64,000 nt of DNA, from assembly GCA_943704425.1 (NCBI GenBank), contig CALSCP010002175.1:1-64000 (forward strand), in the 5' to 3' direction. The notes beneath the pieces were generated by a model. That model was given only the letters and a program-made list of their open reading frames with translations, was not told the origin of the DNA and made no database searches. Position numbers and translations under genes: made by a program. This document shows, piece by piece, positions 56,191-64,000 of this stretch (its first letter is position 1; each line of letters begins with the position of its first letter). This DNA comes from Ministeria vibrans ATCC 50519 (lineage: Eukaryota > Protista > Filasterea).

Positions 56191-58865
56191 TTATGAACTG
56201 CAACTAACCAACAAGTGTTTTTCCCACTCGGGCGGTCTCTCGCCCATCGCCTCCCTCTCTCCTTCTTCCGAACGCTCAAAGGGCGACTCCAACACACGAT
56301 GGAGTCGCTTAAGTGGCTCATAGTCCCCTTTGTCCTCTGCAGCGCGAATGACATTCTCAGCAAGATAGTTGCGCAACACATACACGGGATTAACAGCCTA
56401 TGCAAGATATTTAGTTTTAGTAGGAATCAATACATTTCTAGAGAGTGGCCATTCTCATGCAACAAAAGGGAAAATAAAAAAAAAAACTCTCCCCTTCAGG
56501 GCTACGGTGAGGGCAATATGTCGAGGGTTATACTATGTGGATTTCTTACTTGCATTGAGTTCATTCTTTGAGCTTCTTCCGTTTCCGTCAGATTTCCTCC
56601 GTTAAACAGTATCACGTAGTCAGTAAGCCACAATTGAAAATCGCTCTGAATTGCAATCTCCTCTTGCGTCCCATTGCGGAAAAAGTCAGAGAGTGCCCAA
56701 TTCAACTCACAAGTTCCAATCGGAAGGGTCACTAAAACACACAATAATACTATTAGTCCAGTCTCAAAAAACCCCCCCTCTCACTGCGTTCGATCCGGTT
56801 ACATAATGAATATTCCTTCAAAATGTCGATTCGCGTTTCGGACATTGCGCGGAAAAAGCCCGAAAAATCTATCTGTCCTCTTTCCATCAACGTCAAAAGA
56901 TCCTCGATAAATAGCAAGTCCATTTCGTCATTCGAAAAGGCGTTTGCCTGTGTTTGTGTGTGCGCCATTGAGAGATCAAGTCCCAATTTTTGACGCATTA
57001 ATCGCTAAAACAAACAAACAGACATGTGGGTGGATTTTGACTTTTGAGTGAAGAATCGCAATTAAACATTGGGTGACTATCCCTTTTGGTATTTCCTACC
57101 AGATAATGTTGATCAAACATCTCAGGAAACCCTTTGAAAAAAAAAACGAGCAAAACGATGATCTAAGTTTGAAGTATTCGATATTAATTGACGTACGATC
57201 GGCCCACTTTGCATTTCCCCCGACAGACTCAATCAGCCTCAAAATGGACCAATGGACTCTGTTTGGCTGATTCTTAAAGGAATAGAGTCCGTTTTCATCC
57301 GACGTGTTAGGGACATAATCCGCAGAATAGGCTGACACAAACCCAAACGGTCCAAAATCAATTGTGTGGCCTAACAGACTAAGAAGAAGAAACCAATCGG
57401 TTAATGAGAAGATACTAACAGAAAAATCATCAGAAAAGCGCTCCATACATGAAAATGAAACACAAAAGAACTTATAGTTGAAATTTTAGACAAAATCAAC
57501 AATTTCCCAGTAAATCGTTGCAGCATTCAAACAATTAAATGACACACGCAACCCCACCCCACCCGAAAAATCAACACGTCATACTGATGAATACACACAT
57601 GAAAATAAGAATAATTTCCTTGGTACCTTAAATTATCGGTATTCAGTACTCCATGAGCAAACCCAATGGACTGCCACTGAGCCACTAATAGCGCGCTTTG
57701 GTTCATTATCGCACTCACAATTTGCTCTAAGGTGCTCTCATTCGGATCTAATGAGTATCCCTAAGTTGACGTACAGTTTAAATTAGTGTCCAGCTAAATT
57801 CGTGTGCCAACTTAATACCTCTTGAGCAACATAATTCATCATTTGATTGACTAAGTCCATTCGATTGCGTTTGCTTTGCAGTTCAATTGAGCCGATTCTG
57901 AGCCAAAGAGCGGGACTAATTGCGCGAAGAACGATTGCGGCCTTTTCATATTGTGCCTACACATCAAACCAAACAAAACTCAATCTCTCTCATATTCCGC
58001 TCTCTTTCGCTCCCTTCTCATTTCTCATTACGTTTCCATTGTAAAACTTATCGCGAATGACCTTATGCTCACGAGCCACGACCAATGCAAGGGCACGTGA
58101 CGTGCGGATGTGGAGGGCAGCGAGTGCTTCGGACGCTAAGAATTCACGAATGGACGAGCGGACGACAGCACGGCCGTCTCCGTCGCGAGAATAGGGCGTG
58201 CGCCCGCTCCCTATGTCGACGCACAACGTGTGTTTGGGGTTTGGTGTGTGCTCTCTCTTTCTCTCTCTCTCTCTCTCTATCACTTTGTTTCCCTCCTTTC
58301 TCGGTAGCGTCGCGTACCTTTGAGCTGGAGGTCCCAGAGGGTGTCGTTGGGTCCGTACGCCACGCCGAGCGAGAGGGCCCGGCCGTCGCCCAGCTGACCG
58401 GCCCATGAGCCAAACTGGTGGCCGCCATAGCAGTGCGCAAGGGGCGCCGCAAGGGGCGGGAGCCACTCGCCCGACGTCAGATCGCGCAGTGCTGTGAGCG
58501 ATGGCTCTGAAAGCGCCTCGTCGAGAGAGATGCCAAGGACAGTGTGCAGAGCCTACACACAAACACACAAAACAACAACGGACGACATTTCACTCAACCT
58601 GAAACGCACTCACAAATGATTTGAATGACTCTACCTGGCGAGAATACGCGACCAAATCCACGCCACCCGGCAGCGGCTGGGCAGCAGCAACACTGTACAC
58701 AGCCCCATACACCTGGCGCGGGCGGTGCATGGCGCTGTTGTCGTCCACGGCGAATCCGTCGTGTCGAGCGCGAAAGAGCAAATTCTCGATCTCCCCACGG
58801 CTCCTGGCAAGGCACCCCAGCAAGATTAGCCACGTCAACAGTAGGTGGCCGCGACAAAGCAACAT
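56191..58865 (-). CDS. SELENOO: Protein adenylyltransferase SelO (YdiU family), Cys-type, multi-exon
   Basis: [79 protein letters not shown] and C-terminal VSCSS. Confidence 0.95.
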
Positions 58866-58959
58866 AGGAAAAAAAAAAATCTGAAGTCGAAACAGAGTGA
58901 GTCGAAAATCGAATAATAATAAAAAAAAAATTCTGACTTCTTTGCAGATTTTTTCTGTG

Positions 58960-61536: not shown

Positions 61537-61545
61537 TGATTATGA

Positions 61546-64000
61546 TCATTGGATGTCGAGAATGCAGCCAATGTCGTAGATGGCGTACTCGGGGCGGTTC
61601 ACCACTGAATCGGTTCCTGGCTTGCCCTCAACGTAAACGGTGTCGCAGCGCAAGGCAGTCAGTCGCGCGCGTGTCATGTCCGGAAGAGCCGTGCGCGTCA
61701 CAAGCGATACTCCAACGCGAACCTTGACGCTCAGCACAGTCGTACCAAAGAGGCGCGCTTTACTCGTGTCTTCACTAAAGTACACCGCTGCTCCAAGTAG
61801 AAGACGTTTTCCTGTGAGTTTATCCGTCAAATTGCCTGTCGGAAATCTAATAAAAGAAGGAGCGACAAGGGGGTGAGAGGGAGAGAAAGAAAGAGTAAAT
61901 AACAATGCGCTTGTGTTCTTGCGGGTTAGTGGTTAGGGCAGTAGAAGTAGGAGTAGTAGTGGTGGTGGAGGAGGAGGTCGCAGGGGCACGGGGTTTGTCG
62001 CACTCGGGTAGGAGACAAGTGGTTCCGTCGTCGAGCGGGGACTTGGCAGCTCGATGGCAGTAAAATTTTACCCCCAAACATAGTAAACAAATACCTGAAC
62101 CCGGAACGCTTGATGTTGGCTGCGTTAGCAGGAGATGTGCCGTGGAACAGCGTGAGAACTTTGCCGGCGTGTCCCTTTGTTTCAACGGTGGGCCTTATGA
62201 AACAACAACAAAAGGCGCAGCATCAATAGAAGTCGGAGAAAGGGATGACAAAACTTGTATTGTTACTGTGAACTTGTACTGCTGTCTCGACACGTTTTGC
62301 CACAGAAGGCAGAGTACTTGAGCGTCTTTGTGTCAAGGTAGCAGGGACGTGTGCAGCCGCTGCGGGAGCACGGTGGCGCAGGAGCGGCCGAGGCCGAGGT
62401 CGCAGCGCTGGAAGTGGCGAGCGGACGCCCAAGGTTGGAGAGAGGGTTGGTAGCTGTCGTTGTGGTCGTCGCTTTGCCAGCTGGCGATGAGGTCGACTGC
62501 GAGAAGGCACCTACAAAGCTGTAAAGTCAGAAAAAGATTCATTGCGCCTGATAGATATGTGTGAACCTCGAGATGTGAGGCCACGTTCGCGTGCTTCGGT
62601 ACTGTGCTTGACGCCACAACACTCGTGCTGCCGCCCATTGCTGTCGACAAAAGGAGGGCGAGTGCAACCGGGCAGCAGACACTCAGTGGGCTTTGCGTCG
62701 CCGCCTGTCGTCTTTCGTTGTCCCTTTCCACCACCACCACCACCACCACCACCACCAGGTGTCGACTTGAAGCACTCCTGGCACCAACCTTTTCCATTGG
62801 AAGTCGGGTTTTTGAGACACTACACGTGTAGAAGTAACGGGTGAGAGGGCGGTTGAGAGAAACCCCAAGAACGAACCTTGGTGCAAACTCCTTTCTTTTT
62901 AGTCATTGCATGACACGCTGTACACATGTTGGCGTTTGCTTCCATACCGCACTTCTGGTGGCACTGTCGGCAGCTCCAGCCGGCGGGGTCGTCCTTGATC
63001 TTTTCCTTTGGCACATTCGATAGTGGGAAGTACAGCGGCAATAGCTTTTTGTAAGCATCTGATGAGATATCGTCAAACGTGACAAACACAACCCGCTGTA
63101 AAGAGAGAATAAATGAAAGAAAGAACACGTAAGACGGAGAAACAATGCGAGAAAAAATCATTTCTGACAAGTTGAGATCGCTGCAAGAAGAGACGCACAA
63201 CAGACATAGCAATGCGCGCGGCCTTGTCGGTGGGGAAGCCATACACTCCAGTTGAGATGCAGGGGAACGCCTAAGAAACAAACACGCAAGAGATTGAGGA
63301 TCTTCTTTCGTCCATGTACCACAAACACACACACACACACACACACACTCACACACACACACACACACACACACACACACACACACACACACACACACAC
63401 ACACACACACACACACACACACACAAAAGCACGTACAATGGATTGCGCATTCTTCTTGACAGCAAGCTCAAGACAGTTGATGTAGCACTTGGCGAGGTTG
63501 TGCGTGGCGTTTGGCTCGTGGCCCTGTGGACCAACCGTGTGAAAGATAGCCTTGAGGTGCTTGAGACGGTAGGGCTTTGTATCACATGCACTGCCGACGG
63601 GACAGCGGTCGCCGTTTGAATTTGTGGACTTTTTTTGACACTCTTTTAGCAGCTGCGGACCGGCGGCTGCGTGGATCTGCGCAAATCACACAAGCACAGA
63701 AAAACCCCCAAAAAAGGGAGAAGAGAGAAGTAGTGATTAGTGATCCAAACAACAGAAATGGTTGCAACTTACAGCGCCATCTACGCCCCCTCCACCTACA
63801 AGACGGGCGTTGGCGGCATTGACAATGATGTCAACGTCAACCTTTGTGATATCCGTCTTGAAGACGGTCACGAAGCCATTGAGGTCTGGACGGAACTGCG
63901 CATATGCAAAAGATGTCTGGTGGTTGGCGGGATTGATGCTGGCATCGCCCCACCAGAGCGGCACGGCAACACAGCCCGACGAAGAAGCCGCTGTTGCTGC
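61546..64000 (-). CDS. Macrodomain + zinc fingers + Gig2/PARP-like ADP-ribosyltransferase domain protein; 5' end beyond the window
   Basis: Macro: [47 protein letters not shown]: [19 protein letters not shown] (about 62095-62150, frame not in the track), [23 protein letters not shown]. Confidence 0.85.
61940..62050 (-). repeat. 111-bp inverted copy of 60389-60499
   Basis: Reverse complement matches 60389-60499 with one visible mismatch; lies inside intron 61847-62094. Confidence 0.93.
63325..63425. repeat. (CA)n intronic microsatellite
   Basis: Directly visible; a similar array lies at 4213-4273 in a TAF4 intron. Confidence 0.95.

Follow-up and report, generated by a model that had tools for sequence, protein, structure and literature searches.

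Two genes with ADP-ribosyltransferase domains form the left end of a finger-tagged gene block in Ministeria vibrans

The locus

The stretch of DNA analysed here, hereafter the window, comprises positions 1-64000 of the 126,673-bp contig C2175 (CALSCP010002175.1, forward strand) in the genome assembly of the filasterean Ministeria vibrans ATCC 50519 (GCA_943704425.1; 29.7 Mb, 2,860 contigs). Three adjoining genes lie at its right end: a SelO gene, a gene that codes for zinc fingers followed by a PARP-type ADP-ribosyltransferase (ART) domain (gene 2), and a gene that joins a macrodomain, fingers of the same kind and a second ART domain (gene 3). A block of genes tagged with these fingers begins, at its left end, with genes 2 and 3, and we think it likely that the two are the first members of a zinc-module-tagged ADP-ribosylation island, with SelO an ordinary neighbour. 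The region is eukaryotic, as seen from the GT-AG introns of 57-433 nt, rich in (CT)n and (CA)n, that split its coding segments.

58960-61293, plus strand: gene 2, 555 aa; exons 58960-59580, 60014-60627, 60792-61033 and 61103-61290, stop codon 61291-61293
61546-65074, minus strand: gene 3, 919 aa; start at contig position 65074, outside the window, stop codon 61546-61548
65074-63773, 63676-63437, 63270-63169, 63095-62877, 62819-62567, 62510-62267, 62193-62095 and 61846-61549, minus strand: the exons of gene 3 (splice enumeration)
56194-58865, minus strand: SelO gene, about nine exons, Met codon 58865-58863 (per-exon PF02696 matches and splice junctions)

An earlier reading made from the letters alone (the sequence-only reading) had described a SelO, a finger-PARP and a macrodomain-finger-ART gene side by side, and Pfam matches, motifs and, for genes 2 and 3, closed frames bear out all three. 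One correction concerns gene 3, whose start lies outside the window. Since gene 3 extends past the window edge, contig DNA beyond it was taken in. Domain searches and folding were run per exon or per stop-free stretch.

Two zinc modules confined to one block

Genes 2 and 3 have in common two cysteine-rich modules, a Cx4C...Cx3[HC] finger and an N-terminal Cys/His module with the consensus RGxCxxCxCxx[YF]...CxxCxHxPxxH (alignment A4). Profiles of the finger (A3, 44 fingers) and of the module (A4, 19 copies) were built from the window contig and from three loci of other assemblies (L010-L012, see below). When these were searched against the whole 29.7-Mb genome, all 12 finger matches and all seven module matches fell at 58,984-76,644 of the window contig. 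Between about 59 and 78 kb, every gene modelled has the N-terminal module, the finger, or both.

Apart from genes 2 and 3, a further four loci of PARP type and three of NADAR type lie on the contig. PARP genes were found at exon level at 67.9-69.6 and 71.5-72.7 kb, further PF00644 matches lie at 71.9, 92.4 and 101.8-102.8 kb, and NADAR (PF08719) matches lie at 70.7, 74.3 and 75.1-75.5 kb, the whole genome having only some five such loci. The finger-tagged block thus holds, apart from genes 2 and 3, two PARP genes, NADAR genes, and an unclassified Cys-rich gene with its paralog. A literature search found no published description of finger-tagged PARP/NADAR clusters.

Neither zinc module has a Pfam match, and for the N-terminal module no significant relative was found among solved structures. 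Two identities were tried for the finger and rejected: Rtr1/RPAP2, the best Pfam match (gene 2 exon 2), stayed at 14.9 bits (cut-off 33; E 0.034), and Spp1/CFP1, which the 44-finger profile ranked first among solved structures, had a non-significant E of 0.046. The Cx4C...Cx3H spacing that the C-terminal finger of Spp1/CFP1 and the Rtr1/RPAP2 finger have in common with the island finger is a lead, not a sign of membership.

Two paralogous genes of the block, gene 4 (contig 65.6-67.1 kb, L003:2599-4127) and its copy (76.2-77.8 kb, L004:3180-4818), each have an N-terminal module, many CxxC...H motifs and one Cx4C finger, and no Pfam domain.

Gene 2, a finger array before a short PARP-type domain

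58993-59076, plus strand: N-terminal Cys/His module (48.4 bits with the A4 profile, whole-genome search)
59338-60571, plus strand: six Cx4C...Cx3[HC] fingers, starting at 59338, 59479, 60029, 60176, 60284 and 60422
59581-60013, plus strand: intron 1, with a 21-nt repeat array, an assembly gap of 8 N and an 8-nt repeat array
60792-61290, plus strand: C-terminal PARP-type ART domain, about 145 aa, exons 3 and 4
60946-60957, plus strand: FHGT, with the triad His
61015-61032 and 61105-61122, plus strand: GQAYGAG/EYFAED across the exon junction, with the triad Tyr
61228-61251, plus strand: KRIIVMKD, with the third triad position

The spliced model of gene 2 (four exons, splice enumeration) closes its frame at 555 codons and agrees with what had been read from the sequence, namely six Cx4C...Cx3[HC] fingers and then a PARP-type domain. 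The fingers score 39.6-50 bits in the genome search; the one at 59479 is of a short "WPF" type, and that at 60422 carries a Thr-rich insert. Intron 3 (61034-61102, 69 nt) is in frame and stop-free, and is confirmed by the homologs described below, all 12 of which are missing its 23 codons. The ART domain was analysed as the stop-free stretch 60793-61290, with this intron included. An automatic gene call, P0005 (135 aa), also runs through intron 3. The homologs of other genomes are intronless at that place. In intron 1, the repeats at 59640-59996 amount to 9.7 copies of the 21-nt unit, the 8-N gap and 17 copies of the 8-nt unit, which makes the true length of the intron uncertain.

In the Protein Atlas the ART domain scores 0.96 to clusters of PARP catalytic domains. 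A word search and BLASTP gave 12 homologs (P0006-P0017) with 40-46 per cent identity, and each of the 13 sequences in the resulting alignment (A2), among them the window domain, has a PF00644 match with E <= 0.01 (best 1.2e-11). When the family profile was compared with solved structures, it matched the catalytic domains of PARP12, PARP15, PARP14, ZAP and PARP10 at E about 2e-6. The FHGT and GxGEYFA motifs are invariant in A2, and both align with the corresponding motifs of PARP12 and PARP15. The third triad position, just before (I/V)VVMKD, is Arg in gene 2 and D, T, A or N in the homologs, and aligns with the non-Glu position of PARP15. Since the catalytic Glu associated with chain elongation is not there, the gene 2 domain, of H-Y-x type (histidine, tyrosine, variable third residue), is predicted to transfer single ADP-ribose units at most, i.e. 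to be a mono-ADP-ribosyltransferase if active.

Several searches returned little. Gene 2 exon 1 (module and fingers) had no match in a word search of proteins of 202-644 aa, a collection that apparently lacks most proteins of this same genome. Single-exon sequence searches of the PDB gave nothing significant for either ART domain, PARPs being reached by the family profiles only, and genome searches with both ART exons returned self-matches and no paralog.

Gene 3, a macrodomain and a minimal ART domain on one chain

63169-63901, minus strand: MacroD-type macrodomain (end of exon 1, exons 2 and 3, start of exon 4)
63773-63820, 63659-63676 and 63232-63258, minus strand: macrodomain motifs NAAN...GGGGVDGA, IHAAAG and ISTGVYGFP
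62772-62972, minus strand: two Cx2C-x(11-12)-Cx2C knuckle pairs of unclassified type, read from the sequence, no Pfam match
62604-62681 and 62290-62370, minus strand: two Cx4C...Cx3[HC] fingers (genome search, 52.9 and 43.5 bits)
61549-62193, minus strand: minimal ART domain, about 132 aa, exons 7 and 8
62136-62147, minus strand: FHGT, with the triad His
61768-61785, minus strand: VYFSED, with the triad Tyr
61573-61593, minus strand: PEYAIYD, with the triad Glu

The eight exons of gene 3 splice into a frame that closes at 919 codons, and exon 1 codes for three N-terminal modules, a coiled-coil segment and low-complexity linkers. The macrodomain matches PF01661 with 61.3 bits for exon 2 alone (cut-off 22) and with 62.9 bits when the genome was scanned. 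Among solved structures its best matches are macrodomains of the MacroD type, YmdB and MacroD1/2. The motifs NAAN...GGGVDGAIH and G(V/I)(Y/F)G(F/Y)P mark hydrolase macrodomains. Both are kept in exons 1-3 of gene 3, so that this macrodomain is probably a hydrolase.

Behind it, a 57-nt intron (62876-62820) with a GTTCGT donor and an in-frame TAG divides the second knuckle pair. An A20 or RanBP2 finger identity, considered for these knuckles and for a similar motif in gene 4, was dropped for want of Pfam support.

The ART domain of gene 3 has a complete histidine-tyrosine-glutamate (H-Y-E) triad, and its FHGT, VYFSED and PEYAIYD motifs align with those of its relatives (alignment A1). Such relatives are very few. 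Four came out of 1.84 billion representative proteins searched exhaustively with HMMER, one of them a metagenome fragment that is 99 per cent identical, and a profile word search added three. The domain thus represents an extremely rare, minimal H-Y-E family. There is no gap across the exon 7/8 junction in A1, and P0002 confirms the junction.

On PF00644 the relatives P0004, P0002 and P0003 score 42.2, 28.0 and 25.2 bits, respectively, two of them above the cut-off, and among solved structures the A1 profile reaches PARP15, PARP14, PARP10 and the tankyrases at E about 1e-4. The structural model of P0003, used as a stand-in for the gene 3 domain, has a predicted local distance difference test (pLDDT) score of 62.4. 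The Foldseek matches listed for it are all ART-fold chains, at E >= 0.04, and in VIA-align the model reaches Z 6-6.7 with diphtheria toxin, Tpt1, PARP16 and PARP1/2. The two ART domains of the locus have no detectable similarity to each other past the HGT strand (hhalign probability 0.6 per cent), and this, along with the 61.3 bits on PF01661, supports the earlier description of gene 3 as a macrodomain, the same finger type and a second, different ART domain.

A more distant relative, P0019 (414 aa, from a Logan assembly), consists in part of two tandem mini-ART units, and its N-terminal motifs resemble Cx5C...H...H (PBZ-like) fingers when compared by eye only.

Genes 2 and 3 also have a short inverted repeat in common:

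60389-60502, plus strand: arm 1, 114 nt, in the coding sequence of gene 2 finger 6
61937-62050, minus strand: arm 2, in gene 3 intron 7, sense to gene 3

The arms are 98 per cent identical, and the copy in intron 7 lies within a stop-free frame. Gene conversion or exon shuffling in the recent past could have produced this inverted duplicate; alternatively, it could serve as a cryptic exon.

Recurrence in other eukaryotes

Five homologs of gene 2 were compared in their genomic setting (L010-L014, from one NCBI and four ENA assemblies), on contigs of up to 1.95 Mb. At L011-L014, within 20 kb of context, the gene 2-type domain stands among three to five PARP open reading frames (ORFs) and one or two NADAR ORFs, and the 7.5-kb contig of L010 holds two PARP ORFs. 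The three loci scanned for zinc modules, L010-L012, have the N-terminal module and four to five fingers before the ART domain, including the short "WPF" finger, and there fingers and N-terminal modules lie upstream of PARP and NADAR ORFs alike. In P0008 a finger is fused to the gene 2-type ART domain itself. The linkage of finger-PARP and NADAR genes thus recurs in other eukaryotes.

Synteny had been proposed earlier as a check on the three-gene cluster, and in these assemblies it gave a divided result. The relative of the finger-PARP gene stands beside another PARP in all five assemblies and beside NADAR in four of them, but neither SelO nor a macrodomain was found within 10 kb at any of the five loci (tblastn with the SelO exons and the macrodomain exons of the window, respectively, and Pfam for SelO).

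Two of these loci hold tail-to-tail inverted copies of the gene 2-type ART domain (L010:3946-4305 and 4928-4563; L014:10001-10381 and 11142-10768), which echo the convergent genes 2 and 3 of the window.

What the island may do

If genes 2 and 3 belong to a tagged island, gene 2 would supply a six-finger array with a short PARP12/14/15-like domain that keeps the NAD-binding His and Tyr and not the catalytic Glu, and gene 3 would supply a MacroD-type remover and a minimal H-Y-E writer on one chain, as in PARP14. The common zinc modules may steer both the PARP-type writers and the erasers (the macrodomain, and NADAR in the neighbouring genes) to one target. This target could be nucleic acid, since NADAR reportedly strips ADP-ribose off the guanines of single-stranded DNA, and the eukaryotic NADARs tested do likewise in vitro (PMC10789625). 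The outcome would be a reversible ADP-ribosylation system, most plausibly for genetic conflict or stress, and by analogy the island may have an immune, stress or conflict role. The writer/eraser module that had been suggested for the three genes is supported for genes 2 and 3, more strongly than first put forward, by the island, the shared zinc modules and the recurrence, but not for SelO (see below).

Among known systems, the vertebrate macro-PARPs (PARP9/14/15) resemble gene 3 in that a macrodomain precedes a PARP-type ART domain within the same polypeptide, and the PARP14 and PARP15 catalytic domains are among the best solved matches of both ART family profiles. In contrast to them, gene 3 has a single MacroD-type macrodomain, an ART domain of about 130 aa with H-Y-E (PARP14 and PARP15 have no Glu at the third triad position), additional zinc modules and no detected WWE domain, and it is unlikely to be their ortholog. 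Gene 2 resembles the CCCH PARPs (PARP12, ZAP/PARP13 and PARP7) in having a zinc-finger array before a PARP domain of mono-ART type or an inactive one, and its family profile has PARP12 and ZAP among its top matches to solved structures (E 2e-6 to 7.5e-5); however, its fingers are Cx4C...Cx3H rather than CCCH, its ART domain has about 145 rather than about 200 aa, and no WWE was detected.

Fish Gig2 proteins, of about 160 aa, have an N-terminal part that is weakly PARP-like and a family-specific C-terminal part (PMC3617106). One Gig2 sequence from the supplement of that paper, compared by eye only, has the pattern HGTS, GVY[LF]S.D, E..[VI][WY]D in common with the gene 3 ART domain, which the sequence-only reading had called Gig2-like. 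No protein bearing the Gig2 name appeared in the profile search with that domain, which covered proteins of 68-215 aa.

In bacterial DarT-DarG systems a PARP-like writer is linked to an eraser, a macrodomain or NADAR antitoxin, as PARP and NADAR genes are at 68-75.5 kb here. The island differs in being eukaryotic, intron-bearing and multi-gene, with shared zinc modules, and the likeness is one of genetic linkage, no sequence search with DarT having been made. One may go further and consider the island a eukaryotic counterpart of DarT-DarG, a conserved, physically clustered set of writers and erasers whose zinc modules guide them to one shared nucleic-acid target. Viral or mobile-element DNA or RNA would then be reversibly ADP-ribosylated, and gene 3 would be a self-limiting writer-eraser fusion; we offer this only as a tentative suggestion that is rather unlikely to hold.

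If the preferred reading of a tagged island is correct, its interest lies in one pair of zinc modules, found in this genome in the island only, being shared by writers and by erasers of two unrelated kinds, and in the recurrence of the PARP/NADAR arrangement in distant eukaryotic assemblies. To our knowledge, functionally linked gene clusters are rare in eukaryotes. The island would be a concrete candidate for dedicated reversible ADP-ribosylation outside vertebrate interferon biology, and it suggests a context of partners and substrate for eukaryotic NADAR proteins, for which we know of no established cellular role. It also newly defines the two zinc modules without Pfam match and the very rare minimal H-Y-E ART family.

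Several observations weigh against this reading. The window exons score low on PF00644 (20.3-20.9 bits for the gene 2 ART exon pieces, below the cut-off of 26.7, and 11.9 bits for gene 3 exon 8 alone), so that it is through relatives and profiles that both ART domains are assigned to the family. For the gene 2 domain the AlphaFold model, in which the in-frame intron was read through and 12 homologs were used, is unusable (mean pLDDT 42.9), and the fold evidence for the gene 3 domain comes from a relative that is only 46 per cent identical, with a pLDDT of 62 and middling Z scores. The zinc-module profiles were built partly from the window contig, so that they are informative only in finding no match in the rest of the genome, and a short finger profile could overlook diverged copies. 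Lastly, none of the five other assemblies showed a macrodomain-ART fusion of the gene 3 kind.

Alternative explanations

The island might be merely the trace of tandem and inverted duplication of one finger-bearing ancestor, combined with domain swaps, so that its genes are neighbours by birth and do not work together. The repeated PARP/NADAR pairs and the two copies of gene 4 are what such a history would leave behind, the nearly identical 114-nt inverted duplicate points to ongoing local sequence exchange between genes 2 and 3, and the tail-to-tail domain copies at L010 and L014 fit as well. However, duplication does not easily account for the same modules being present on writers and on two unrelated eraser folds (macrodomain and NADAR), nor for a PARP/NADAR neighbourhood that is kept even where identity to the gene 2 ART domain is no more than 40-46 per cent. 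Together these suggest selection for linkage or shared targeting, and we consider duplication by itself an unlikely explanation.

A second alternative concerns SelO, which the sequence-only reading had included in a single nucleotide-transfer cluster. Its features are as follows (the motifs by direct translation):

58376-58429, minus strand: Gly-rich motif YGGHQFG...GDGRA
57632-57655, minus strand: HGVLNTDN
57339-57359, minus strand: DFGPFGF
58866-58959, no strand: 94-bp, A-rich spacer between the divergent start codons of SelO and gene 2, with an acceptor-like TTTGCAG right before the gene 2 ATG

The identity of this gene as a SelO is well supported by its exon matches to PF02696 (69.5, 48.5, 37.1 and 13.6 bits; cut-off 22.8) and by the three motifs, which we take to be the catalytic loop (HGVLNTDN), the metal-binding motif (DFGPFGF) and the Gly-rich motif of the SelO active site. 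Joining the exons after HGVLNTDNL brings back the SelO consensus (splice enumeration), and its C-terminus reads ...VSCSS, the stop codon lying immediately below 56194. In all this it is like the SelO/YdiU protein AMPylases, down to the ...CSS tail. It differs from them in having Cys in the tail, where human SelO has selenocysteine, and in being one of three paralogs.

SelO, gene 2 and gene 3 could then form one module in which AMPylation and ADP-ribosylation are co-regulated from a shared divergent promoter. In favour of this, the start codons of SelO and gene 2 lie head to head, 94 bp apart, the active-site motifs are intact, and one of three paralogs could have taken on a new role. Yet short intergenic spacers are to be expected in a compact 29.7-Mb genome, genome-wide searches with the finger and N-terminal module profiles found neither zinc module in SelO, and the other two SelO loci of the PF02696 genome scan (C313:140603-142041, 50-72 per cent identical to the window copy in conserved exons, and C2753:16779-18054, 37-45 per cent identical) are on contigs without a PARP match. 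As SelO is also not found beside gene 2 relatives in the other assemblies, its only tie to the island is adjacency; we therefore regard it as probably a bystander, and the one-module explanation as quite improbable. Three SelO genes are in themselves unusual for a genome of this size.

That the island is captured giant-virus or mobile-element DNA is very improbable: in the Protein Atlas the gene 3 ART exon comes closest to clusters of small Nucleocytoviricota PARP proteins (score 0.92) and the G+C content at 56-58 kb is below that of most of the window, but the island genes have spliceosomal introns rich in the (CT)n and (CA)n microsatellites that also occur in other parts of the region, their relatives are on eukaryotic contigs of 0.27-1.95 Mb, and no viral hallmark gene was seen among the ORFs inspected, albeit with no systematic search for capsid, packaging or integrase genes or terminal repeats.

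A neighbouring reading frame

Adjoining SelO on the left is an unbroken ORF of 851 aa (53538-56093) with internal repeats rich in Gly, Ser, Thr and Val. Its product seems to be a repetitive surface protein or one of beta-helix type, with no apparent relation to the island.

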